From positions 1 to 18,753 of the forward strand of contig MCFH01000192.1 of the NCBI GenBank assembly GCA_002104945.1: a stretch of DNA of 18,753 bases, written 5' to 3'. Positions within the stretch are counted from its first letter, which is position 1. Every line of letters starts with the position of its first letter. The DNA comes from Piromyces finnis finn. Taxonomy: Eukaryota; Fungi; Neocallimastigomycota. Made by a program: the position numbers and the translations under genes. Under the pieces are notes generated by a model that did no database searches, had not been told where the DNA came from, and saw nothing but the letters and a program-made list of their open reading frames with translations. Shown here in pieces: positions 1-18,753 of this stretch.

Positions 1-2115
1 ATAATATTAGCAATATTGAATTTAGTCCTTCTAGTGATAAAATTGTTTGTATTATAACAACAACAATAATAATATAAATATATTTTTAATTTTTTTTTAT
101 CTCTAAATTAATGCTAATACATTACTTTTTTTTTTAAAAAAATAAAATCAATTTATTTGTATGAAAGGCCTATGTTAAAAATAATAATATGTATTATTTG
201 AATTTAAAAACTGGAAAATCTGTTCAAATTACAAATGATGGATCTAAAAATATTTTTAATGGTATTTCTGATTGGGTTTATGAAGGTAAAATTAACAAAC
301 AAAAAATAGTATTAATATTTTAAGAAAAATTAAAGAATCATTAAAGATAGTTTTTAAGTAATAATTTAAGTATAATTAAATTAAATAATAAATTAATAAA
401 TTTATAAATTTTAATTAATTGTGAAAAATAGAGGAAGTATTAATGTCAAGTAAAGCCTTTTGGTAATATAATCTTTATAATTTTAATAATATTATAAAAC
501 TATATAATTTAATTACATTTTTCATTAAATAAATGTTTTTTATTATTATTATTATTATTATAAATATAGGTGGTCACCAGATGGAAAATATCTTGGTTTT
601 ATTAAATTTAATGATACTAATGTTCCTGAATATGAAATACCTGTTTATCTTGATAATAATCTTGACGGAATTTCATATAATGCTTGGAAATCAATAAAAT
701 ATCCAAAGGTATTGCTGTAATATTATTTTGTGTTAATATCATAAACAATGACATATACATATTAAATATCTATAAATCTATAAATTTTTAAAATATAGCC
801 CGGTTTTCCAAACCCAGATGTAAATTATATATATATGATACCACTAAAGAAACTCGTAAAAAAAATAATTTAAAAAAAGTAGTTTATGAAAAAGATTATG
901 AATTCCAACCGGATAATCTAGTTATTTTACAAGTATTATGGGCAACAGAAGATAGTAAAAATCTTTTAATTCGTACGTCAAATCGTGTTCAAGATACTGC
1001 TAGACTTTTTTCAGTAAATATACCTCATGAAATTGAAACAGAAAGTGATATTACAAAAGAAAAAGGAACTTTTATTGCAACTTTCTTAAAGGAAGATGAT
1101 CATGATGATGATGGATGGTTAACTAGAGTAATTATATATTGATTATGATAACTAATCTATTATTAATACTATTATTCTTATTATTTTTACTAATATTATC
1201 TATATAATTAAATGAATATTTTTATTTACTATTATAATTGTATAATTTATAAGACCGAATCAATATATTTTGTTCCACCAAATGGATATATTGAAATTAT
1301 GGAAGACAAAAATGGCTATGAACATATTAATTATTATCCTGACATATATGATGAAAAAATCCATGTTTTTAACATCTGGAGAATGGGAAGTAGATAGTAT
1401 ATCTGGAATTGATAAAAATTAAAATAATGTAAGGCATACTTAATAGTAATAGTAATGATTATTTATCAAAATTTTTATTAAAATTATTAAATCATTATGT
1501 ATTATTATATCTTAATTTATAGTTATTATATTAGTACCGAAGAAGGATCAATGCAAAAGCATCTTTACAAGAAAATTATAAATTTAAATATTATTTGCTA
1601 TAAAATTGTTAAACGTTCGAAAATATCAATAAATATATATATATTAATAACAATAAATTATTATTATTATTATAATTACGTTATTATATAGAGTAAATTT
1701 AAATGGTCAAAGAAATATAAAGATGACACCTCCAGTTTCGAAATAGAAGAAACAAAAGGAAATAATTAACTCATTTGGCGAAAACTTATCTGAAACTGGT
1801 GTATTTAGTGCCTCCTTTTCACCAGGTTTCAATTTTTATCTTTTGAATTATGATGGTCCAAATATTCCATATCAAAAAATCTTATCAACTCAAGATTGTA
1901 AGTTTGATAAAGAATTAAAGTATAATTATTATGAAAATAAAATAGAATTATTGGATTTCTATTTCTATCAAACTAAAAGAAAAAATTAAATTATATATAA
2001 AATAGCTTATGATGTTTTCATATTGATTTATCCAATAATGAATTATTAGAAAAAGCATTATCAAATTATGATATTCCAAAATTCCATAGATTTGAAATCC
2101 CAATAAATGATTATA
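1..2115 (+). CDS. Partial inverted copy of the DPP-IV family peptidase (beta-propeller exons only; lacks the 5' end within the window and the catalytic domain)
   Basis: Exons: <1-44, 168-285, 432-462, 570-708, 799-1127, 1254-1428, 1523-1570, 1692-1897, 2006-2115. Translation includes FNGISDWVYEEEV (DPP-IV Glu-Glu motif), WWSPDGKYLGFIKFNDTNVPEY, KYPKPGFPNP, NRVQD, LTSGEWEV and FSASFSP..FYLLNYDGPNIP. There are several 1-nt frameshifts, and the donor at 1571 lacks its T. Confidence 0.9.
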
Positions 2116-4573
2116 GTAAGTCTAATAAATTTAATTGTTTTAATATTCTTTTAAAAAAAAAAGAGAGAGGAGACATATTATTAATATTTATACAAAAAAT
2201 CATTTTAAATTTTTTTTTTTAAAAAACTTACGGATGAAAAAAACTGGATATTTTTTTAGGTGAATTTTCATCAAAATCAGGTGGATAAATAGCAAGTGCA
2301 TTAACCGCTGTTTTTTTTGTTTTTTTTTTTTTTAAAAAAAAAAAAAATTTAAAATGATTTTTTGTATTAAATATTAATAATTAATGTCTCTCTCTCTCTT
2401 TTTTTTTAAAAAGAAATATTAAAACAATTAAATTTATTAGACTTACTATAATCATTTATTGGATTTCAAATCTATGGAATTTTGGAATATCATAATTTGA
2501 TAATGCTTTTTCTAATAATTCATTATTGGATAAATCAATATGAAAATCATCATAAGCTATTTTATATATAAATTTTAATTTTTTCTTTTAGTTTGATTAG
2601 AAATAGAAATCCAATAATTCTATTTTATTTTCATAATAATTATACTTTAATTCTTTATCAAAACTTACAATCTTGAGTTGATAAGATTTTTTGATATGGA
2701 ATATTTGGACCATCATAATTCAAAAGATAAAAATTGAAACCTGGTGAAAAAGGAGGCACTAAATACACCAGTTTCAGATAAGTTTTTCGCCAAATGAGTT
2801 AATTATTTCCTTTGTTCTTCTATTTCTGAAACTGGAGGTGTCATCTTTATATTTCTTTGACCCATTTAAATTTACTCTATATAATAACGTAATTATAATT
2901 AATAATAATAATTTATTGTTATTAATATATATATATTTATTGATATTTTTCGAACGTTTAACAATTTTATAGCAAATAATATTTAAATTTATAATTTTAC
3001 TTGTAAAGATGCTTTTGCATTGATCCTTCTTCGGTACTAATATAATAACTATAAATTAAGATATAATAATACATAATGATTTAATAATTTTAATAAAAAT
3101 TTTGATAAATAATCATTACTATTACTATTAAGTATGCCTTACATTATTTTATTATTTTTATCAATTCCAGATATACTATCTACTTCCCATTCTCCAGATG
3201 TTAAAAAACATGGATTTTTCATCATATATGTCAGGATAATAATTAATATGTTCATAGCCATTTTTGTCTTCCATAATTTCAATATATCCATTTGGTGGAA
3301 CAAAATATATTGATTCGGTCTTATAAATTATACAATTATAATAGTAAATAAAAATATTCATTTAATTATATAGATAATATTAGTAAAAATAATAAGAATA
3401 ATAGTATTAATAATAGATTAGTTATCATAATCAATATATAATTACTCTAGTTACCATCCATCATCATCATGATCATCTTCCTTTAAGAAAGTTGCAATAA
3501 AAGTTCCTTTTTCTTTTGTAATATCACTTTCTGTTTCAATTTCATGAGGTATATTTACTGAAAAAAGTCTAGCAGTATCTTGAACACGATTTGACGTACG
3601 AATTAAAAGATTTTTACTATCTTCTGTTGCCCATAATACTTGTAAAATAACTAGATTATCCGGTTGGAATTCATAATCTTTTTCATAAACTACTTTTTTT
3701 TAAATTATTTTTTTTTACGAGTTTCTTTAGTGGTATCATATATATATACATTACATCTGGGTTTGGAAAACCGGGCTATATTTTAAAAATTTATAGATTT
3801 ATAGATATTTAATATGTATATGTCATTGTTTATGATATTAACACAAAAAATATTACAGCAATACCTTTGGATATTTTATTGATTTCCAAGCATTATATGA
3901 AATTCCGTCAAGATTATTATCAAGATAAACAGGTATTTCATATTCAGGAACATTAGTATCATTAAATTTAATAAACCAAGATATTTTCCATCTGGTGACC
4001 ACCTATATTTATAATAATAATAATAATAATAAAAACATTTATATTAATGAAAAATGTAATTAATTATATAGTTTTATTAATATTATTAAAATTATAAAGA
4101 TTATATTACCAAAAGGCTTTACTTGACATTAATACTTCCTCTATTTTTTCACAATTAATTAAAATTTATAAATTTATTAATTTATTATTTAATTTAATTA
4201 TACTTAAATTATTACTTAAAAACTATCTTTAATGATTCTTTAATTTTTTTCTTAAAATATTAATACTATTTTTTGTTTGTTAATTTTACCTTCATAAACC
4301 CAATCAGAAATACCATTAAAAATATTTTTAGATCCATCATTTGTAATTTGAACAGATTTTCCAGTTTTTAAATTCAAATAATACATATTATTATTTTTAA
4401 CATAGGCCTTTCATACAAATAAATTGATTTTATTTTTTTAAAAAAAAAAGTAATGTATTAGCATTAATTTAGAGATAAAAAAAAATTAAAAATATATTTA
4501 TATTATTATTGTTGTTGTTATAATACAAACAATTTTATCACTAGAAGACTAAATTCAATATTGCTAATATTAT
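1..4573. repeat. Giant near-perfect inverted repeat (fold-back palindrome): left arm 1-2226, spacer 2227-2327, right arm 2328-4573
   Basis: Base 1 onward (ataatattagcaatattgaatttagtc) is the reverse complement of the sequence ending at 4573 (gactaaattcaatattgctaatattat). Exons and introns match throughout, including the twin ORFs 1212..1397(+) and 3176..3361(-). The left arm runs to the window edge, so the repeat may be longer. Confidence 0.98.
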
Positions 4574-5777
4574 TAAGTTCGTTTTTAAAATTAAATATTT
4601 TTTTGCTTTACAATCAAAGACAACATAATTTTGAATTTTAGAATGACGAAATACCTAAAATAATAAAGAAAAGAAATAATAGGGAATAAAATTTTTATAT
4701 TAACATACTATTGTAATTTAAAAATATTTATTTGTAAAACTTACTGTTTTTGAGAATGTAGGAATAATTAAATAGTGTGTATCTTTGGATAATTCAAAAC
4801 CAAATTTATTTTATTATTTCCCTTAATATATTAATATTTATGATATAAAATTATTAATGAAAAAAAATTTTTTTTATATGTATATTGATATTAATTTGTT
4901 GCAATATATATATATATTATTATTATTGAAATTTACTTTCATCAAATCCTGCATTGATGCTACAATTTTTACTTCTTTTTGATATTATATTAAAAAGTTC
5001 TATATCTCCTTTTTGACTAACTTGAATTACTGTACCATCTTCACCTATAATATTTGAATTTTTTTAAAAGATATATATATTTGATATTAATTTTTTCTTT
5101 TTAATTGATTTTTTAAATTCCATTTCAGCACTTTTTTTTTAAAAAAATATTTTTTAGAATATTTATATATGCTTATAAAATAAACATTTACCTGAATCAA
5201 ACCAATATACTGGATTTTTTGAGGACGAAGTTTAAATACATCCTTCATTTCAATTCTTTGTTTCCTGATAAAATTGGTCCTGGCGTTTTTCCTTTATCTA
5301 AAAATACTTTTTTTTTTAAAAAAAATGAATTATAAAATATGAATTTTCATTAACTTTTTATTCATCTTAAATAATTGGCTCTTTTTTTTATTTTATTTTT
5401 AAAATAAAGCATTTTATTAAATAGTTATAATATTTACAACCAATTACTATTATCGTAAATATGGATAGTAAACCAGTGAGTGCATATATTTTAATTTTAT
5501 TTCCTGTTTTCTTGAAAGGTGGTTGCATTACATATCCAGCTCCATTTTCCTTCAATAAGTAATATGTATGTATATTATAAGTGAAATTATTGAAAAGAAA
5601 GAAAGGTGGAATTATATATATTAATATTTATAATAATTTTACTTCGTCTTCCTCTTCTTCATCTGTTGTTATTTATAAATAACTCAGTATCATCATCCAT
5701 TCGATAATAGTCTCATTTTCAGCATCATTATTCTCTAAAAAATCATTTATACTTTCTGTAATATTATCTTCATTCAT
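2232..5777 (-). CDS. dpp4: Dipeptidyl peptidase IV family (S9B; Dap2/Ste13/DapB-like type II membrane protein), 15 exons, truncated at the start of the catalytic domain
   Basis: ATG at 5777 (MNEDNITESIND..., acidic cytoplasmic tail). Exons: 5777-5643; 5549-5438 (signal anchor IKIYALTGLLSIFTIIVIG); 5297-5192; 5044-4937; 4821-4745; 4654-4531 (VFRHSKIQNYVVFD); then the mirror of the plus-arm exons to 2556-2447; and a last exon 2307-2232 (VNALAIYPPDFDENSPKK[YPV]FHP). All introns are GT-AG. The expected YGGP and GWSYGG motifs are absent. The symbol indicates the family only; the orthologue is not resolved. Confidence 0.92.
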
Positions 5778-6311
5778 ATTTTTAAGTGAAATGTAATTTG
5801 AAATGTTGAAAAAATCCAGTTACAAGTGTAATTGTTGAATTTAAAAAAGAAATAGTTAAAATTTTTATTTACAATAATAATATAAAGTTTTCTTATAGTT
5901 GTTATTATTTTATATTGTTCCTTTTTTTTTCTTTTCTTTTATTACTATTATTAGAATAATTTGAAATTAATGATTTTAATATTTTAAATTTGATATTATG
6001 GAATAGCAAAATAATAAAACTATGCTATGGTAGTAGTTTTTAATAGAAAGATATGTTATAAAACATTCAAAATGTACTCTTTTTAATAAATATCTTAAGT
6101 TTTTTTTTGTTTTTTTCTAAAAGATAACAACAACAATAGGTGGTGCGTCTTTTAGATTTTTTTTTTTAAAATGGAAGAGCGGTAATATTTTTTAATTTCA
6201 TTTTTAATATATAAAAATTAAGTTAATTATTAAAAATAAATTAAAAAAATTATTATATAAAATAAATGAATAAATCCAATAATAATTAAATAAATTATTA
6301 TTTTTTTAATG

Positions 6312-6351
6312 ATTGAGAACCTTTTTATTCTATTTTAAAAAGGTTCTCAAT
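6312..6351. repeat. Perfect 16-bp inverted repeat with an 8-nt loop
   Basis: attgagaaccttttta (6312-6327), loop ttctattt, taaaaaggttctcaat (6336-6351). Confidence 0.9.
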
Positions 6352-6396
6352 AATGATAGAAAAGACAAAATAATATAAAGTATTATTCAAAGAGAG

Positions 6397-6400
<4 letters not shown>

Positions 6401-6428
<28 letters not shown>
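6401..6428. repeat. (TA)14 microsatellite
   Basis: Read directly from the sequence. Confidence 0.95.
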
Positions 6429-6431
<3 letters not shown>

Positions 6432-7782
6432 ATTTTATTCGATAAATCAATTTCTATATTTTATATTTTATACATTCTTTTATATATAAATGTATTAAAT
6501 AATATATAAATAATAGGATATGCAATGAATTACTTTTCACTGAATAAGGATTATGGTTAAGTAACACATTTTATTTTTGAATTTCATGTTAAGAAAAACC
6601 TTTCATTCCTTTAATATTCATTTATTTAATATTCAATGAAAAGTCTTATTTATTTATTTATTTATTTATTTGTTGTCTTATTATATATAAATGGAACGAA
6701 ATATGTAATAATATTAACCTTAATATTAAAGAATATATATTAATGTATTAGAAAAAGGTACATTATTCAATAGTAAATGTAAGAAAAAAGCTTTGAATTA
6801 TTATTGATTAAACTATTTCTATAATATAATATAATTTTAAGTTTTATAATAATTATATTATGATTGTTTTACTATCAAATTATGTAACAGTAAGCTTTTT
6901 TTTTTTTTTTTTTTCATTGTATAGCATTTATATAGATTTAGAATTAAGAACAAAATATAAAGTTTTTTCTTTTTTTTTTTTTAAACTTTTTTACGCAGAA
7001 AATTTTTAAATTTTAATTTATGTGGAATGGCTCCAAAAGTAACTTTAAACGATAAAGTTCTTTTTATTCTTTATGGTGCTTAAAAGAAATTAATAGTAAT
7101 TTTTATTTTTATAGGCATTAACCTTTTATCTTTATTCCAATTTATAAATATACATAAGAAAGAAAAAAGTGAAAAAAAAAAAATGAATATATTCATCCTA
7201 TATCTCCTAAATGGATAGGAATTTTTCTGCATCTACATTAAATTCGAAAAAATTTAATAGTAAAATCAAAAAAAAAAAAAAAAAGAAATATTAATGATGT
7301 GGTAATGCTTATTTGTTTTCATATTATTTTACAATTCAATGATTGTCTTTTCATCTAATATTTATTAGAAAAACTAAAAAAAAAGAGTATATATATTTTA
7401 TTACTATTTTTATTTTGCCATTAGTATTGAATTAAAATAAATAATCATAAACATTTTTATTTATTTATTTATTTATTATAAAGGAATAGTAATTCTTTAT
7501 AGACATATTCGTTATTACTTTTATAATTACAAAATATTTTTATTTCCCTAATGAACTCTACCACACTTTTCTTTTTTTCTTATTACATTTTACAAAGTAT
7601 GAAAAAAGTTTATTAAATAATAAAAAATTTAATTAAAATCTATTTGTTATAAAAAATTAAAAAAAATTTTTTTATTTTAAAAAAGAAAAAAAATTTTTAT
7701 TTGATTTCTGCGCTTCAATAAAAAATATTTATAAATAAAGAGGTCAAAGCACTTTTTTAGAAAAAAAGGAAAAAAAAAAAGG

Positions 7783-7806
7783 GAAGAAGAAGAAGAAGAA
7801 GAAGAA
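7783..7806 (+). repeat. (GAA)8 microsatellite upstream of ash2
   Basis: Read directly from the sequence. Confidence 0.9.
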
Positions 7807-8142
7807 TAGTAGTATATATATACAAAGTAAATATACTAAACTTTTTTTTTTAAATATAAAATAAAAAAAAAGAAAAGAAATTTTATAAAAATATTATTAT
7901 ATAATAAATAAAACATTAATAATAAATAAATAAATCTATTTTTTAATTTAATCAAATAGTATTAATATATATTCTTTTTTCTGAAATAAAAAGAAATTAT
8001 ATTATATTACTGAAATATATATATTTGAGGCAATATTATTTAACTTATCGAATAAAAATATATCAGGAGTCACAAAAAAGGGATTTGAAGTAATCAAGAT
8101 TTTATATTTTTTTTTATTTAATTTAGAAATTTGTTATTCAAT

Positions 8143-8688
8143 ATGAGTTTACCTTACAATGCAAAGACATTACACTGGAATCAATTTCATACAACAAACA
8201 AAGAAAATAAATATTGTTATTGTGGAAAGAATAGAACATTAACAGAACTTAATTTACAATGTATGGAATGTAAGAATTGGTTTCACGAACATTGTTTGAA
8301 AAATAAAAATTTTAATCTCAAAAAAAAGTGTATTACCATTCATCACAAACTATCGTTTTCGTTTGTAGTTTATGTGCTCGTGAGGAAAGTTTTTCAAGAG
8401 TTACTTCATCATGGAAAGATGCTATTAATACTGCTTTTGCAAATCTAACAGTAAATCGTATGAAAAAGGAAGGTAAAATTAATGCAAATGGGAGAAGGAA
8501 ATCCAATAATACCAAATAATTATTGGTTCAATAAAAAAGATGGTATTTGCCCATTCTTGGATAATCATTGGGAAAAGTTATGTACAAATAGGTAAGGAAT
8601 GGAAAAAAAGAGAAAGATGAAATTTTAAAAATCTAGGTTTTATAAAAAAAATTTTTTTTTAATAAATATAATGAATAACAATAATAAA

Positions 8689-8761
<73 letters not shown>

Positions 8762-8768
8762 TAATAAT

Positions 8769-8800
<32 letters not shown>

Positions 8801-11220
8801 ATTAATAATAATAATAATAATATAATAATTAATATAATTAATAATAATAATATTGTTTGATATTAATCAGTTTTATAAATAAATACTATATACTATATTT
8901 TTATTTAAAACAAAAACAACAACATATTATTATTTGATAAAATAATAAAATTGAAAATAAATATGTTGTATACCATATAAATTTTTTTTATAAAAAAAAA
9001 AAAGAGCTCGTACTCCAACTTGGTGGGCAACTGTAAGTATATGATGGATAAAAAAGTCTAATAATAAATTTTCTTTTTTTTTTTTAGTAAAGCATATTTA
9101 TTTATTCGATGTTAATTACTAATAAACATTAATATATAATATATAGGTTGGAAGTAGTATGTATTCCTCAAAGGATCAATATATAGCAAAGGATGAAGAT
9201 AATAGAAGTGCTTCTTCTGATTTCACATTAACTAATAAAAATTTATTTAATCTTAGACCAGCACTTACAGTATCTGTAAGTGTTCATATTCTTTTTTTTT
9301 TTTTTTAATAAAATATTAAAATAATTATATATATATATTTGTTAAAATACTCATTTATTATATATTTTTTAATATAATTAATTTGTATTTGTACATATAT
9401 GAATGAACTGTGAACTTTATTGAAATTATAATATTTAATTACATTGAAACAAATAATCAAAAATTTTCAATTAATAATGGATAAAAAAATTATATTTATG
9501 CTTATTCATGATAAAAAAAAAAAAAAAAAAAAAAGCAGAGTCAAAGTCAACCACAAAAGAAAAATAAAGTTCAGAAAAAGACTACACGTTCACAATCTCC
9601 TACTTATGCACCATTATTTTACCTGAAGATACATTATCTTCAATTGTTAGATGGAATTTTAACCACAGATACAATGACAGAACATCCATATAATAGAAAT
9701 GGTTTTAAATACGATTGGATTGAGGAAGATCCATTGTTAAAGCATATTCATTTCAGAAAAAAAAATGTATTAAATTCTCAGGGACCAGGTGTTTTCTTAA
9801 GTAGATTAGATCGTGATCCTGGTATTACCTTAAAAGAAGACGGTTTAACCGCTACCACCGATAAAGGCTTCCGTACAGTTCGTGCCAATTTTGGTGTTTA
9901 AGGAAGGCAATTGGTATTTTTGAAGTCAATATTAATAAAGGTGGTGAAAAGGATGTAATAAATGGACCAAATGTTAGAATTGGTTGACTAGAAGAGAAGG
10001 TATATTTTAAATATCAACATTATAATAATAAGTATTAAGGAAAAAAAAATAATAATTTAAAATAAAAATTATCATTCCATATAGAATTATAAAATAATAA
10101 TACTTTTTTCATTTTGAATTATATATATATATACTAAATCTATTAATATTTTTTCAATTAAATCAATAAAAAAAAAAATTAATTTATTAATTATTATTCA
10201 ATATTAAAAAAAAAAAAAAAAGCTACATTATACGGACCAGTTGGTTATGATTCTTATGGATATGGATATAGAGATAGAAATGGTGATAAATTACATGAAT
10301 CACTATCTGTGCCTTATGGAGAATCCTTTGGCAGTAATGATGTTATTGGTTGTTATATATCTTTACCAAAAATGAAATTTCCTAAAAAACCTAGTAAAGA
10401 ATTAATTAAAAGTCAAAATACAAAAATTAACTAGAAAAGAAGAAGATCGTTTAATACATACCCAATTAAAAACCAAGTGATCTTATTGACGACCTTTCCT
10501 TAGTTTCCAGTTGAATCACATTCTATTATTAATAATGTAAGAAAAAGAACAGTCATTACGTTTAAACAAAGACTCTATGCTGAATCAATGGATTATTTAC
10601 CAATTAATTCACCTGGTTTACTTTCCTATTTAGATATCAAGTTTAATAAATCAAGTAAATAAATTTATTATCATTATCATCATCATAATTATAAATATTT
10701 AAAATGAAAATTATTAATATTGCAAAATTTTCAGCAATACAAATATAATAACTATCTAAACAATTATAATATTAAATTTATTTTATTAAATTTTATTTTT
10801 TATTTTATTTTATTTTATTTTAATATATATTTTTGAAATTGTTGTTACCTTTTAATAGATGACGACGATTCAAGTGAAAAAAATAATAAAATCAAAACAT
10901 ATGTTAATTAATCCAGGTTCAAGTATCTCATTTTATAAAAATGGTGTTAATCAAGGTACTGCTTTTGAAGATATTCCATTACATATACCTGCTGCAGTAT
11001 CATTACCTCTTGAAAGAAGAAAGTTAACCCTTGGAAATTATCAAAGACCACCAACGTTAGGTAATTATATATACAATGAATATAATAAATCTCTAAAAAA
11101 AATGATAGATTTAAAAATATATATATATATATAATTTGGATGAATATATTGATTATTCCTATTAATATATATTATATTATTATTATTTTCTATAAATATA
11201 AATAATATTCAAAAATAATA

Positions 11221-11251
<31 letters not shown>

Positions 11252-11902
11252 TAGCTGATGATGGTAGTTTAGGTTACTATCCAACTATATCTTTATTTAA
11301 AGGTGGTAGTGTCACCATGAATTTCGGACCCAAACTTTAAATATCCACCAAAAGATTTAGATGAACAAAATATTAAATGGAAAACCAATGAGTGATCGTT
11401 ACTTAGAAATTGAATCTGAAGTATGTATTACTATTAATCTATAGATACAATAAATATAAATAATACTATCCAATATTATATTATTTCCAAATGATTTATA
11501 AATTATATTTATTAATTAGTATATTATTATTATTTCAATAATTTATTTTTTATTCGTATTATCAAAAGGAATGCCTTTGGGATATTATAGATGAAGTGTG
11601 TACCTATTTTGGTGATTTTGGTATTGATGAAGTCAGTGAAGAAGAAACGACAGCAAATCAAATGACTGATATGGATGAAAATGATACTGCTGAAGAATCC
11701 TCCTCAATTCGTTAAAACGCATAGTAGAAAATCAGGAAGAGGTAGAAGTAGAAATCCAAGTCATAATGATAGTTATGAAGAAGGAGATGACAGTGAAACC
11801 AGTACTGTTTCAAGAAAATATCATAGAAAATATAATTCTGATCGTGATAACGAAGAGAGTAGTAGTAGTCATATTAAGAAAAGAAGAACAAATGATAACT
11901 AA
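8143..11902 (+). CDS. ash2: Set1/COMPASS H3K4 methyltransferase complex subunit Ash2 (Bre2/ASH2L homologue): PHD-like finger, winged helix, SPRY domain and Dpy30-binding helix
   Basis: Exons: 8143-8591, 9005-9032, 9147-9275, 9536(or 9539)-9999, 10223-10654, 10859-11060, 11255-11420, 11569-11902; all introns GT-AG. Motifs: YCYCGKNR..LQCMECKNWFHEHC; CPFLDNHWEKLCTNRARTPTWWATV; EHPYNRNGFKY; SPRY segments LSRLDR..TATTDKGFRTVRANFGVKEGNWYFEV, GPVGYDSYGYGYRD, DVIGCYISLP, ISFYKNGVNQGTAFEDI, DDGSLGYYPTISLF and MNFGPNFKYPP; C-terminal ECLWDILDEV. Multiple 1-nt frameshifts must be corrected. Confidence 0.93.
8680..8851 (+). repeat. Long imperfect (AAT)n microsatellite in ash2 intron 1
   Basis: About 170 nt of aat units with occasional att interruptions, inside intron 8592-9004. 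Confidence 0.95.
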
Positions 11903-12988
11903 AAAAAAAAAAAAAAAAAAAAAACACCACTAATAATTAATATAAATTTATTTAATAATTTAATAATAGAAATATTGAAAGTATATAATTTAATAATAAA
12001 AGTTTTTTTTTTTTTTTTTTATTTTTATATATATATTTTAAATAATATATAAAATAATAATAATAACAATAATAATAAAAACGCATAATAATGATAATAA
12101 TATAATATTTTTTATCTTTTTTTTTTTTTTTTTTTTTTCATTATTATTTTTTAATTATAATTATGTTAATATTTAATTTTTTTTTTTTTTTTTTTTTTTT
12201 AACCCTAATTGAAAAAAAAAAAAAAAAAAGGAACAACGACAACAAACAAACAAACAAACCAACAAAAAAAACAAACTACAAATAGTATTATAGAACAAAA
12301 TTTTTAAATTTTTTTTTTTTTTTATTTAGATTAAATAATAATTAATAAATAAATAAAACCATTTATACCTAATAAAAGTTTTATTTCATTTTGAAATAAT
12401 CAAAAAAATTAAAAATATTTTTAGTTTTCTTTTTTTTTTTTTTTTTTATTTTATATTTCTTATTTTCTTACTCATTGATTTATTTTTACTTCGCAGGAGT
12501 TAAATTCTTTATTCTATTTACTTTACATTTCACTTTTATAAAATAATTCTTTTAAAAAATATTAAATAAAAAATTAAAAATGGAAATAGAGTATTCTATT
12601 CCAAAATTTAATAATTCATCTATTTTTTTATCTTCAAACTTAATATTAAAAAATTAAAAGCTACCTGAACTATCATGGAATCATGGAATCTTTACCTTAA
12701 ATAAATTACATGTATATAGATAAATAAATAAATAATAATATAAAAAACAACTTGGAATATATATAATTTATTTTTTATTTTTTACTTTTTCTTTTTTCTT
12801 TTTTTTTTTTATTAATATAATAAATAATTTATATTAAAATACTTTTTTATTTTATTATTGTTTTTTTTTTTTTTTTTTTTTTTTATCTATTTATTTTTTA
12901 TTTTTTTTTATTTCTAATGATATATTTTATACTATGTTTTATCATATTAAAATTTAATTTTTATGGTAGAGAATTGTTATTATTATTT

Positions 12989-15900
12989 CTAATTAGATAT
13001 AATTTGATTTTTAGCGAAATTAATAAAGATTTGTTCGAGGGAAGTTTTGATTGAAACTATAATCGTTAACTAATCCCTTCTTTTTATATTCTTCCATTCT
13101 TTCAAATACCAAACCTAATTTTTTGGTCATTTTAACTTCGTATTTTCCACGGTTATTTGAAATTCTTTCCATCTTATATTCATGAGAATTAAATAAATTG
13201 CCATTTTTCAACAACTTCGGAATGGAATTGGTCCACATCGTTACATTGTAATTCTAAAATATAACCTTTGCCATACTTCATCTTTAGATGTTCTGGACTA
13301 CCAATACAAATTAAACGTCCATTAACTAAAATAGCTAAACGATCACAAAGTTGTTCGGCTTCTTCCATAGAATGGGTCGTCATAATTAAGGCAGAATCAT
13401 TTCTTCTTTTGGTACTCTTAATAATTTCCCAAATTAAACGACGAGTGGATGGATCCATACCAGCTGTAGGTTCGTCCAGTAAAATACGTTCTGGATAACC
13501 ACAAATAGCAATTAAAATAGAAAGTTTACGCTTAGTACCACCACTTAAATCATCCACACGCTTATTTTGATGTTCTTCTAAACCAGCGGCATTAATGTAT
13601 TGGAGTAGCATATACCTTAGCATCGTCACTATCATAACCACGAATACTAAGGAAGAATTCAATATGTTCACGAAGTGTTAATTCCTTCCAAAGAATATCG
13701 TGTTGAGGACAGTAACCCCATAGAAACGTCACCCAACTTTGCTTGGTGAGTTTCAACGCCATTATAACAAACACTACCTATAGTTTGAGGAATAGTTAGA
13801 GGAAACAATATTTTAAAGTGGTTGATTACCAGCACCATTAGGACCTAAAAGACCGAAACATTCATGAAGTCTAACACCAAAATTAACATCAACTACAGCG
13901 GTTTTAACAAGTTGATTATATTTAACAATAGATTTATGAATATCACCGTAGGTATAGTCATTGGCATCCCTATCTCTGATTTCCTTTATTTCGCTTGGAT
14001 CAGTAATTTTTCCTTTTGAAACGTTAAATTCTTTACAGAGATGAAGCGTACTAATTGGTAATTCATTTTGATGCTCTTTAACATACTCATATTCTCTTTT
14101 AACATCATCATCTCCATTTTCTAATTCCTTTTCATAAATTTCAGAAGTTTTTGGTGGTAATTCACTAATATCACTTTTATTGGTTTGATTCTTCATACGA
14201 TCTAAGAGTATTAAAATGAAATAGTATACAAATAAAAGAACGATCAATAATGCTATAAGTGGACTAATTATATTATGGTAATTCATAATGGTTTTCATTG
14301 ATAATCAGAGGAGTTAAAGGAAGAGAATAACTTTAGGGTAAAGAGAGCATTCAATAAAACAACAATACCAAAGGATGGACAGAGTGCTGTAAAACATAAA
14401 CAGAAAATAATTGCTGTATTACTGTATAAAGCATCAAGGTTAGAACTACTTGTGTTGCATTAAGGATAACTAAACCGAAAAATCCAAAAATGATTGGATA
14501 AGTATTGATAGCACTAATACCGGTGAATGCTGTCTCTTCTTTTTTAAACATAAAACTGATAATATATTGATAGAGCATACATGGAATACTCCATATAATT
14601 ATAAAGCAAAGAACAAGTAAAACAATGCTTACGTCTAATAAAGGTTCAAAGCGAATAACAACACCACTAAGAATAATTAAAGTACAAGTACATAAGAAAA
14701 GGAGATCATCCGTAATAAGATTTGAAATCCAGTAGTTAAAACGTGAAACACCATTTAATTGAAGTTGGAGAAGTAATTGGTTAATTCTTTCACGTGAAAT
14801 TAATGGACCAAACTTGTTTAAAACTGAAACAACACCAATACCTATTATAAATCCTATAAATGTTAAACCGACCATAGCAACATTGTCTTGTTTTTCATCG
14901 AATGGTTGATTATTAACAATAATACGATCGCTAATATTTTTTGAGGCTTAGGAAGGCATTACTAACAGTATTAAGAGAAGCAGGTAAACTATGAGGCATG
15001 GTACTATTATAATAAATTTCTACATTTAACTTATTCTCAGATTCTACCATTTCACCTCCGAGAAGAAGAAAGATAATAGGCATCTTCAAATCTAGGATAT
15101 TGTATTTGTTCAATTAAAACATTGGATACACCAGATATATCATTACCGACACCGGAAAGAATGTTTTCGGTTGTGATTGAAGAGTTGAATTTAAAGAATA
15201 ATTTATTTTAGTTTCAGGATACATACTAGGAACAGTAATGGCTTTAGATTCATACGTTATAATTCTTTCCTTGAACATCAATTGATTAATACCAAAGAAA
15301 ACTAAAGCAATTAGGAGGATTGGAAGGATGAAAGCATTAAAAGCAAACATCTTATCCTTTAAGAAAATTTTTAATCTATACTTTACAAGGGGTAGAGAAT
15401 AAGTTTAGAATTACTTGGTTTTGGTACAGATTTCAGTTCGGGTAAACTATTATCATTAGTTTGAATTAAGTATTGATATTCATTATCAATATTATTATTG
15501 CTTTTTTTCTTTTTCACTATTATTTATTTGGTCATCTTCTAAACGAATGAAAAGTTCTTCTAAGGTTGGTAAAGAAAGAGCATACTTTCTAATTAAGCTA
15601 CCCGATAAGTTATCTAATTCATTTAAAAGTGGAGCAAAATGATCTGATGAATTCAATGGTAATCTCCAAGTGTAGAATTTATTATCATGGGATTCAAATT
15701 CGTTGGCTTCCTTATTTTCAACATAAATGGCTTCTGGAAGGTAATTCATAATAATTTTATTTACCTTTTCTTTTTCATTAGTTTCAACATCTAAATTATA
15801 CTTCATATTGAAATGGTTTTTAAGATAAAGACTGGTACCAAGACAACGGATTTTACCTTTATTGAGAATTAATTTACGATCGGCTAAAACATCAGCTTCA

Positions 15901-18233
15901 TCCATATAATGAGTAGTAAGGAAAATAACTCTTCCTTCTTTCTTTTTTAATAGTAATTCCCCAAATCTTACGACGAGAGAGTGGGTCTAATCCAGTTGTT
16001 GGTTCATCCAAAAAGATGTATTTTGGATTACCAATAATAGCCATACCAATACAAAGTTTACGCTTTTGACCACCACTTAACTTTGAAGATTTTAATTTCT
16101 TTTGTGGGAGAAGATCAAGTCCTTTAATACTTCATCAACATCAACCCTTAACATTCTTTAAATTAGCATAAAAGTTAATATGATCTTCAACCGTAAGTCC
16201 ATCATAAATAATATTTGTTTGAGCACAAACACCGAAATCTTTACGAATTGCATTAACATTTTTAGATATACTAGAACCATCAAAGTAAACATCACCATAA
16301 GTTGCTTTGATAAGACCTACCATAATATTAATAAGAGTTGTTTTACCAGCACCATTATGACCTATTCAAGTAACAATATATATATAAAAATTTAATAATT
16401 TAATATATTAATATAATTTATTCCTAAGCTTATTAGTTTATTAGGATTACCTAAAAGGGCAAAGATTTCATTTTGATAAACCTTAAAACTTATATCATTT
16501 ACTGCTAAAAATTCTGAATTCTTTCCCTTTGATTGATTTTTATTATTATTATTATTATTATCATTCTTTGAGTTATTCTTATCTCTTTTAAATAATTTAT
16601 GAACACGACTAACTTCAACCATACATTTTTCATTGTTTATTGAATTGAAATCTTCTTGAATATCCTTTTGATAAGTGACTTCATTTTCGGAATGAAGATC
16701 TTTTACCTTTCTTTTTGGAGTAAATAAGTATCTATTGTTTTCATTGGAAATTAAATTATCAAGAATAATAGCCAATAAAAAGTAGGTAACAACATTAAAT
16801 AGAGTAATTAATAAATAAAAACCAACATCTGTCTTAAAAATAGTTACAAAACCTAATGATTTGTAGGTATATTTAAGTTTAATAGCACTGTTAAAGAATA
16901 ATCCAAGAGACACTGTTGAAAAAATAAATGATAGTATTCTTGAAATATTTGAATTAAACAAAATTAAAATTTGATTCATATAACAAAGAATGATATAGAA
17001 AAAGATAATAACAACACCGGCAGTTTTAGACTTTTTGAAAAATGTACTAAAAATAAAACCAATACAGCAAGCACTTAATGAGAAAAGGAAAATTACGAGG
17101 AAGATAAAAATGAAATTAACATTTGGTATTAAATTATTGAAAACAATAATTATGGTGAAAACAACGGAGATGATGAATGTAATAAATCCCTCAAGAATAA
17201 ACCATGATAGCCAGAAAACTGTGGGGTGAACACCTGCGATTAATAAACCATCTCTTAATTTATCTTCTTTTTCTTTAACAATATTAAGGGTAATAGTATA
17301 GACGACCGCCAAGAAAGAAAATGTAATATAGTAGCCAATACTTGCGGAAATATCCATATCACTTTCACTTAAATTTGATTCCAATTGACCTAATTCACCA
17401 ATTGAATAATTCAATGAAAAATTATTATCTTTTGTTTTCATTCTAATAAGTGCTTGATCTACCGATGATTGAATTGGGGAAAAGATATTTATATATTGAC
17501 TAGACAATTCTTCCGATGACGTTAAAGAAAATATACTTCCAACATTTGTAATGGGTTCTGTTTCTGGATTTTCTACATCCTTAATATTAAGACGAATTGT
17601 GTATTTTGAAAGATCATTACTTTCAAAAACGATACCAGCAAGTAATTTATCATAACTACTCTCATCTTTATCCTTATCAGTTTTATATTTTACCATTTCT
17701 TCTTGATTCTTAAATTGCATTGGTTTTATATAAGATGTAGAATTAAAAAAATCATTATTTATAGTTCCTACAATTTCTGGAATAATACTACCATCATTTT
17801 CTTCTGGTAATACAAATCCAACTACTGAATACTGATAATCATAAGATTTACTAAATAAACTATATAGAGGTGAAAGAATGGTTGGTTCATGGCTATTTAT
17901 AACAGTACTTTCATTTTTTCCACTATTCTGTTTCAATATGAAACTTATTAAAAACTAATGTACCAATAATTTTTAATGAAATAATAATAGTAATAAAAGT
18001 GAATATGAATATTTTTTTTTTATATTATATATAAATATAAGCAATTTGATATTTTAAAAAAAAAAAAAAAAAAAAAAACTATATTACTTACAAATACATA
18101 AAATTGAATAAATTGGGAAAAAGATTTCAAGAACGATAGTGGCTTTCGAAGCCTTTTTTAAAAGAATATTTCTTTTAACTAAGGCTTTTAATTGATTAAG
18201 GTAGTAACCCTTTAATAAGATTTCAAAATTCAT
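12989..18233 (-). CDS. Full-size ABC transporter, subfamily A (TMD1-NBD1-TMD2-NBD2), about 1,670 aa
   Basis: Exon 1 (18233-18092) encodes [33 protein letters not shown], the ABCA N-terminal signature, and is missed by the ORF track. Introns: 18091-17955 and 16450-16362 (splits FALLG|HNGAGKTT). TMD1 has [29 protein letters not shown]1 has [12 protein letters not shown] and [11 protein letters not shown], followed by [11 protein letters not shown]2 has [43 protein letters not shown] and [17 protein letters not shown]. The end reads [19 protein letters not shown] after frame correction (stop 12989-12991). The ORF-track fragments are pieces of this one gene split by frameshifts. Confidence 0.95.
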
Positions 18234-18753
18234 TATAAAGTTTTTTTTTTAAAAATTCAATATAATATATATATTGTAGTATTTGAGTTGGTTAAATAGG
18301 AATAATATAAGGAAATATTCATATTAATTATTTGCTCTTATATTTATTTAAAGTAATGAACAATATACTAAAAATAATAATAATATATTTACCATGTTTA
18401 TTATTGATAATTTTTTTTTTTCTTTTCTTTGTTGTTTTTTTTATTTCTAATACTTTTTATTATTGATTAAAAAAATTTGTTTGTTTATTTTTACTTTTGT
18501 TAGTTTGTTTGTTAGTTTGTTTATTGCTTTCTATATCAATTCGTACATAAATCACACTAACAATTCCTTTTTTTTTTATTATTTAATAAAAAAAAAAAAA
18601 TTTTTCTTTTTTGATTTTATTTTTATACTTTTTTATTTTTTATTAAATTTAATATTTTATTTAAAATTATATTTTTAAAATTTTAATTATTTCAAAAACA
18701 TTTTAAAAGATTAATTCAATTGGTTTTTTTTTTTTTTTTAATTTTTTTTTTTT

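Follow-up and report, generated by a model that had tools for sequence, protein, structure and literature searches.

Palindromic end of a small Piromyces finnis contig almost certainly derives from a fold-back PacBio read

A small contig of the Piromyces finnis genome assembly opens with a large palindrome in which a DPP-IV peptidase gene folds back on itself. Does this structure belong to the genome of the fungus, or did it arise when the DNA was prepared and sequenced? The window analyzed here is the entire contig, C104 (positions 1 to 18753; 18,753 bp). Because the window spans all of C104, base 1 is the contig end, a point that an earlier sequence-only reading of this DNA had left to be checked. 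The assembly totals 56,455,805 bp in 232 contigs, and the published genome is described as 56.46 Mb in 232 contigs, obtained with PacBio SMRT sequencing only (PMC5622200, Table 2). High-molecular-weight, size-selected DNA with fragments of >10 kb was used, and the reads were assembled with Falcon, FinisherSC, and Quiver (PMC5622200). The genome has a GC content of about 20% and is rich in T(n)A(n) tracts.

Geometry of the palindrome and its counterpart in the main assembly

The 4.6-kb palindrome is present in the deposited sequence where the sequence-only reading had placed it. Its arms were defined by local alignment of positions 1 to 2290 with the reverse complement of 2271 to 4700 and extend from 1 to 2226 and from 2328 to 4573, with a 101-nt single-copy spacer (2227 to 2327) between them. 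The left arm had been taken for an inverted copy of the adjoining 2.2 kb of the gene. The inverted repeat is there, but the arms are not identical: their alignment covers 2,216 columns and contains 3 substitutions and 34 small indels, and the differences are almost solely indels of 1 to 3 nt within A/T runs.

Both arms map to a single locus in another contig, C183, in opposite orientations. The left, short arm (1 to 2226), the inverted copy of 2328 to 4573, ends at base 1 and corresponds to the reverse complement of C183:294206-296439; in the genome alignment, positions 1 to 2220 run reversed along C183:296439-294206, which is the first 2.2 kb of the stretch that the rest of C104 matches. The long-arm part of the repeat (2328 to 4573) corresponds to C183:about 294200-296439 in the forward direction. 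It lies within a segment (2226 to 18742, plus strand) that is a redundant, poorly polished duplicate of C183:294094-310564, forward and colinear with it at 99.05% identity, with 5 mismatches and 131 gap openings. The spacer is contiguous with the long arm and consists entirely of genomic sequence; on the minus strand it holds one small DPP-IV exon (...VNALAIYPPDFDENSPKK...HP) followed by the 5′ splice site gtaag.

C183 is 385,862 bp long, and the matched stretch is interior to it, with sequence running on both sides. No fold-back is present on C183 at the matching locus. Alignment to the genome showed the whole of C104 to be redundant with C183; neither end carries unique sequence. The long-arm side stops at C183:310564 without any distinguishing feature, and the short arm is cut off at base 1, so that no unique flank or telomere bounds the palindrome.

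The fold-back junction sits in T(n)A(n) runs (T11A6 at 2211 to 2227), where the A/T microhomology is at least about 7 nt. The axis contains no recognizable adaptor; the 101-nt center is genuine genomic sequence. When the minus strand of C183:294078-294225 was folded as DNA, the hairpin that a snap-back would form at the junction was as stable as those of shuffled sequences (z = -0.09). The folding model thus lends a snap-back no structural support beyond the A/T microhomology.

Errors and broken genes confined to C104

Over 16.4 kb, C104 and C183 differ by 127 indel events, 113 of them in homopolymers, and by 2 substitutions, all evenly distributed. Relative to C183, the left arm has about 19 indels of its own and the right (long) arm about 21; a single indel position is common to both arms, and there the changes are opposite. 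The arms therefore differ by platform-typical errors, independent in each arm, rather than by substitutions. Stop-free frames of at least 80 codons sum to 3,060 amino acids on C183 versus 1,887 on C104. An ABC transporter gene (12974 to 17997, minus strand; two ABC_tran matches and one ABC2_membrane_3 match) was used as a quality indicator. On C183 it forms one frame of 1,122 codons, which is split on C104 into five frames of 96 to 198 codons. Broken gene frames are confined to C104, and their counterparts on C183 are open.

The peptidase gene shows the same damage. Positions 2232 to 5777 (minus strand) hold an error-laden copy of the 5′ two-thirds of a DPP-IV (S9B) gene, recognized by DPPIV_N matches at 4282-4407(-) that are mirrored at 168-287(+) and 562-711(+). 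The DPPIV_N propeller (PF00930) scores above the cut-off on both arms and on C183. The gene had been described as read normally from 5777 to 2232, a description that fails at the outset: in C104 a frameshift already interrupts the first exon, with its ATG at 5777 (MNEDNITES...IIEWMMILSYL*), and the C183 copy is open. The intact gene on C183 extends from an ATG at 297651 to a stop near 292774 and reads FHP/intron/YGGPNSQ.../...FAIWGW/SYGGYL.../...LLVHGTGD, passing FHP/gtaag without folding back. Its YGGP exon aligns to DPP-IV/FAP structures (5olj_A, residues 511 to 573; E = 5e-9). The 24-amino-acid exon before the junction is too short for such a comparison with solved DPP-IV structures; its sole match, to an esterase, is nonsignificant (E = 0.38). 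The normal continuation after gtaag (YGGP...GWSYGG), which the sequence-only reading had named as the finding that would speak against a biological palindrome, is thus found on C183, in the same assembly.

Peptidase_S9 (PF00326) matches lie at C183:293779-293904 and 293407-293511, and the catalytic motifs IWGW/SYGG, HGTGD, and DNDHS can be read on C183 only; C104 lacks the catalytic S9 domain. Like fungal and metazoan DPP IV of the S9B family (DapB/DPP4/FAP-like), the C183 gene combines an N-terminal membrane anchor with a DPPIV_N propeller and an S9 catalytic domain in which GWSYGG, HGTGD, and DH motifs occur. It is an ordinary member of the family, whereas C104 holds just a truncated, frameshifted 5′ part.

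Recurrence in sibling contigs and origin of the fold-back

C104 belongs to a dense series of contigs, C95 to C118, with lengths of 20.1 to 17.4 kb. Eleven small, read-length contigs (18.1 to 19.0 kb) were examined, with their halves kept apart for the measurement of spacers. In 10 of the 11, a fold-back starts at base 1 to 4. The arms of these 10 are 0.47 to 4.96 kb long, the spacers are 1 to 111 nt long, and the arms differ from each other by 9 to 84 indel events per kb. The 10 contigs come from unrelated loci, and inspection of their spacers by eye gave no obvious common motif. C110 alone lacked a fold-back, and at the threshold applied its genome search matched just a multicopy repeat of 567 nt. 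As C104 does with C183, C100 and C103 duplicate interior parts of C163 and C189; all three small contigs compared with the genome are redundant copies of large-contig interiors.

We conclude that the C104 palindrome is almost certainly an artefact rather than biology: a single chimeric PacBio read that stayed behind in the assembly as a tiny, redundant contig. This verdict rests on the redundancy with C183, the lack of a fold-back there, the independent indels of the two arms, the frames broken on C104 only, and the recurrence in sibling contigs. C104 as a whole very probably represents no genomic locus of its own but a read-length sequence from one or very few fold-back PacBio reads of C183:about 294.1-310.6 kb. 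The sequence-only reading had likewise considered an artefact likelier than a biological palindrome, and its preference is borne out by the YGGP continuation on C183, by the redundant, error-rich state of C104, and by the fold-backs in 10 of 11 contigs.

We infer that one, or very few, fold-back reads lie behind C104. Such a read would follow one strand for 2.2 kb until the insert ends, then turn and read the complement for 16.5 kb. The turn could be made in vitro by any of three routes: a SMRTbell adaptor might be missing or unrecognized, the insert end might be a snapped-back hairpin, or a strand-displacing polymerase might switch to the other strand. Had an adaptor simply been missed at a blunt insert end, a palindrome with no spacer would be expected. 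With its 101-nt genomic loop and no recognizable adaptor, C104 fits a hairpin-ended insert or a template switch better than an adaptor that just went unrecognized. Unable to be fitted into the assembly graph, a fold-back read would survive as a separate small contig. Since normal reads would be assigned to C183, where they belong, C104 would stay error-rich, with about 0.8% error left in its consensus, almost entirely as homopolymer indels.

Known systems offer partial parallels. Palindromic PacBio reads are known to arise when SMRTbell adaptors are missed or missing, and they make up about 0.5% of reads from unamplified libraries (PMC6218980). Like those reads, C104 runs along one strand and returns on the complement, with both parts mapping to one locus, and it has a read's length and an indel-type error profile; it differs from missed-adaptor reads in having a 101-nt genomic loop at the axis and no evident adaptor remnant. 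C104 also resembles the inverted chimeras that arise by strand-displacement template switching, such as those in MDA/phi29 products, in that the inverted join lies about 120 nt back from the 3′ end, on the strand that was displaced, where A/T runs offer short microhomology. MDA, which the sequence-only reading had listed among the possible sources, is nevertheless not indicated as the cause and was set aside: a review describes, for this genome, size-selected, unamplified DNA sequenced by PacBio only and mentions no whole-genome amplification (PMC5622200). A template switch, if there was one, would date from library repair or from sequencing.

The rival explanations place the fold in the living cell. 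One is that a single nucleus underwent a one-off event, caught by a single read, that was biological but neither clonal nor heritable; for example, after a double-strand break or stalled fork near C183:294084, the 3′ end could anneal some 120 nt away, at the T15A14 run, and be extended into a hairpin-capped or fold-back molecule. The strand from 310564 to 294084 does turn about 120 nt back on its complement, at A/T microhomology (T A6 versus T15A14), and the spacer is genuine, single-copy genomic sequence, as a hairpin loop predicts. Such an event is indistinguishable by sequence alone from an in vitro snap-back or template switch, but the junction fold is not unusually stable, and a library or sequencing process explains more economically why the structure is shared by 10 of the 11 small contigs, which come from unrelated loci. 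We regard the one-off event as highly unlikely. It is similarly improbable that the fold-backs of C104 and its siblings formed in vivo at T(n)A(n) tracts, as hairpin-capped breaks or by replication template switching, often enough in P. finnis nuclei to have been sampled repeatedly.

A heritable rearrangement fares worse. C104 could be a genuine second locus or haplotype that arose very recently by inverted segmental duplication (as a fold-back inversion or breakage-fusion-bridge product) of the DPP-IV/ABC transporter region and, being nearly identical to C183, was collapsed or poorly polished. It has the large inverted repeat, short spacer, and microhomology junction of biological fold-back inversions and breakage-fusion-bridge palindromes, and copies of about 100% identity would stop an assembler from extending into unique flanks. 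Unlike such palindromes, however, C104 has no unique flanks, both of its ends being redundant with C183, and essentially no substitutions between its arms, only sequencing-type homopolymer indels that are independent in each arm; the main contig has the normal arrangement, and the frameshifted genes are on C104 only. C104 moreover has the length of a read, and unrelated singleton contigs carry the same kind of structure at their ends. A chromosome ending in this fold-back would also be without about 294 kb of C183, together with the gene's catalytic half. A second locus is accordingly exceedingly unlikely, and the breakage-fusion-bridge amplification raised by the sequence-only reading finds no support. 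The same reading had proposed that, if the palindrome is real, a transcript started at 5777 would run through the fold and give a 2.2-kb hairpin RNA, making a functional siRNA locus that silences the DPP-IV gene. This is a formal possibility only and the least credible of the readings, next to negligible: it needs a real, clonal palindrome, a prerequisite that the evidence does not support, and an intact, normally continuing gene is present on C183.

Consequences for the P. finnis assembly

The fold-back-read explanation means that C104 and its siblings of 18 to 19 kb, at least nine in number, are redundant and error-rich contigs whose first 1 to 10 kb is an artificial palindrome. If kept in the assembly, such contigs inflate gene counts, create false pseudogenes (the frameshifted DPP-IV and ABC transporter genes, among others), and prompt false calls of palindromes, hairpin RNAs, or amplification. 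Palindromes within large P. finnis contigs need to be judged separately. The practical value of the finding lies in flagging the whole class of contigs.

Inverted repeat and its unfolded copy

The window has a base composition of about 20% G+C, with long A/T runs. A repeat scan of the window paired positions 28-2162 with 2400-4547 as a chain of inverted-repeat pieces, and gapped local alignment merged these pieces into arms at 1-2226 and 2328-4573 (2,216 aligned columns, 3 substitutions, and 34 indels of 1 to 3 nt), separated by a single-copy spacer of 101 nt (2227-2327). The differences between the arms are almost solely small indels in A/T runs. The 4.6-kb palindrome described in the sequence-only reading is therefore present in the sequence where it had been placed. 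A search of the Piromyces finnis assembly showed that contig C104 coincides with the window (G000:C104:1-18753); it holds no bases beyond 1-18753, so both ends of the window, base 1 included, are ends of the contig.

That search also located the window's DNA on a second contig, C183 (385,862 bp). The whole window was compared with C183:280001-320000 using blastn, which gave two matches: window 2226-18742 to C183:294094-310564, forward (99.05% identity, 5 mismatches, 131 gap openings), and window 1-2220 to C183:296439-294206, reversed (1 mismatch, 18 gap openings). C104 is thus wholly redundant with C183. It consists of 16.5 kb from the interior of C183, with the first 2.2 kb of this stretch reversed and joined to the left end; at the matching place, C183 has no fold-back.

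The DPP-IV gene on C183 was read exon by exon. It starts at C183:297651 (MNEDNITES..., window 5777), with a membrane-anchor exon after the start exon. The YGGP...GWSYGG-coding continuation, named beforehand as the mark against a biological palindrome, was found on the minus strand of C183, where gtaag and an intron come after the exon ...VNALAIYPPDFDENSPKKYPVLFHP, ahead of exons encoding YGGPNSQMATYNYQFDF...AEDQIKAA, ...YVDEDKFAIWGW, SYGGYLTSKVVEANSG..., and ...FKNVDFLLVHGTGD, with ...YTDNDHSM... in the last exon of the gene. DPPIV_N (PF00930) matches occur on C183 and in both C104 arms, and Peptidase_S9 (PF00326) matches lie at C183:293779-293904 and 293407-293511. The YGGP exon can be aligned along all 66 of its residues with DPP-IV/FAP proteins of solved structure (5olj_A residues 511-573, E = 5e-9), including human DPP4 at around 509-572. 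The start, membrane-anchor, DPPIV_N, YGGP, and Peptidase_S9 exons, read singly, point to a complete, ordinary S9B dipeptidyl-peptidase gene on C183.

Other shared features include a minus-strand, ABCA-like ABC transporter (window 12974-17997, C183:304842-309865; two ABC_tran domains and ABC2_membrane_3), which is intact on C183 as 1,122- and 543-codon frames and lies in frameshifted pieces on C104. A plus-strand open frame (window 10211-10660, C183:302079-302528) has a weak SPRY-domain match (E = 9e-5, under the Pfam cut-off), and the 176-codon frame beside it (C183:301351-301878) matched no Pfam family. A long imperfect (AAT)n microsatellite occupies window 8640-8860, and similar tracts are found at C183:300532-300826 and 316015-316308.

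Errors in C104 relative to C183

In the repeated interval, the left and right arms differ from C183 at about 19 and 21 positions, respectively, nearly all of them 1-nt indels. Only one position is common to both, with a T missing from the left arm and an extra T in the right arm, and the two arms are in effect separate copies of the C183 sequence, each with its own noise. The rest of C104 differs from C183 by 127 indel events (113 in homopolymers) and 2 substitutions, and these are evenly distributed between 2 kb and 18 kb. When stop-free frames of 80 or more codons are summed, C183 has 3,060 aa and C104 has 1,887 aa; the 1,122-codon transporter frame breaks into five pieces of 96 to 198 codons on C104, and the first DPP-IV exon, open on C183, is frameshifted. 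The error of about 0.8% in C104, dominated by indels and centred on homopolymers, is typical of a low-coverage PacBio CLR consensus. Of the two copies, C104 is the poorly supported one.

Fold-backs among small contigs

Contigs C95 through C118 form a dense run of lengths from 20,081 down to 17,452 bp, about read length. Fold-backs were analysed in C104 and 10 siblings (C100, C102, C103, and C105-C111); 10 of the 11 begin with a terminal fold-back starting at base 1 to 4, the sole contig without one being C110. Sibling arms are 0.47 to 4.96 kb long, with spacers of 1 to 111 nt, the fold-backs take up the opening 1 to 10 kb of each contig, and arm-versus-arm differences in the small contigs are indel dominated, at 9 to 84 events per kb. 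Genome searches with C100 and C103 showed each to be redundant with the interior of a large contig, C100 with C163:277900-284929 (short arm mirroring C163:277901-280938) and C103 with C189:870677-879967 (short arm mirroring C189:870677-871493). Because the structure recurs at unrelated loci, always at base 1 and in nearly every read-length contig, it belongs to the data rather than to the genome.

The siblings also carry repeats. C103 contains a repeat resembling a retroelement, about 5.8 kb long (762-6556), with a terminal direct repeat of about 240 nt (query 6319-6556 reappears just beyond each copy); it occurs on many contigs, in 20 or more copies with 99% identity (e.g., C189:870677-876500 and C1:264788-270606), which indicates very recent activity. 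C110 begins with a repeat of about 565 nt (1-567), found on many contigs in at least 38 copies of 97 to 99% identity, which may be a solo LTR or a short non-autonomous element. C109 (1-18136) consists almost wholly of nested direct and inverted repeats with a multi-kb unit (85 to 94% identity) and shows denser indels between its terminal arms (84 per kb) than any other of the 11 contigs; either C109 is a genuine array of alternating repeats, or the read behind it is very noisy. The 25-nt spacer at the axis of its fold-back (2373-2397, …GGATCTCTTTCCG) may bear a vague resemblance to the SMRTbell adaptor stem.

Origin of the turn

In C183 coordinates, the turn joins ~294083-294090 (T A6 C, plus strand) to ~294197-294203, within a T15A14 run that equals its own reverse complement (T14-15/A14, window 2321-2348, C183:294188-294216, in a DPP-IV intron). 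The two templates share A/T microhomology of at least ~7 nt, and about 110 to 120 nt are present once as a loop, the spacer alone being 101 nt. On a path that runs from 310564 to 294084 and turns there, the strand switch falls some 120 nt back along the complementary strand. The junction-region fold was not unusually stable relative to shuffled sequence (z = -0.09), so the turn is supported by microhomology alone, with no strong hairpin. Tracts of the T(n)A(n) type, at which the fold-back joins, may promote template switching more generally, as hot spots, in this AT-rich genome. A snapped-back 3′ end could be filled in, giving a hairpin-ended insert without one adaptor, or a strand-displacing polymerase could jump to the displaced strand; the geometry suits these routes equally. 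A simple unrecognised adaptor ranks below both, since a blunt insert would leave no genomic loop and C104 has one. The sequence is compatible with a turn made in vitro and with a single event inside a cell.

The assembly (56,455,805 bases, 232 contigs) matches that tabulated for P. finnis (56.46 Mb, 232 contigs), for which PacBio SMRT was the sole sequencing platform, with fragments of >10 kb, and Falcon, FinisherSC, and Quiver were used for assembly (PMC5622200, Table 2). In unamplified PacBio libraries, palindromic reads are documented to arise when SMRTbell adaptors are absent or go unrecognised, and they made up ~0.5% of reads in one control set (PMC6218980). A biological palindrome failed every test that was run: C104 has no unique flanks, the arms have neither substitution-type divergence nor arm-specific biology, and the main contig holds the normal arrangement. 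The proposed self-silencing hairpin-RNA (siRNA) locus would need a real genomic palindrome and is unsupported. The redundancy of C104 with C183, its errors, and the siblings folded alike bear out the artefact preferred in the sequence-only reading, and the structure is best classed as a known type, a fold-back (palindromic) long-read chimera kept as a singleton contig. This verdict covers C104 and its sibling small contigs; findings on C100, C102, C103, C105-C109, and C111 (18.1 to 19.0 kb) should be treated as suspect, as probably should those on the other C95-C118 contigs.
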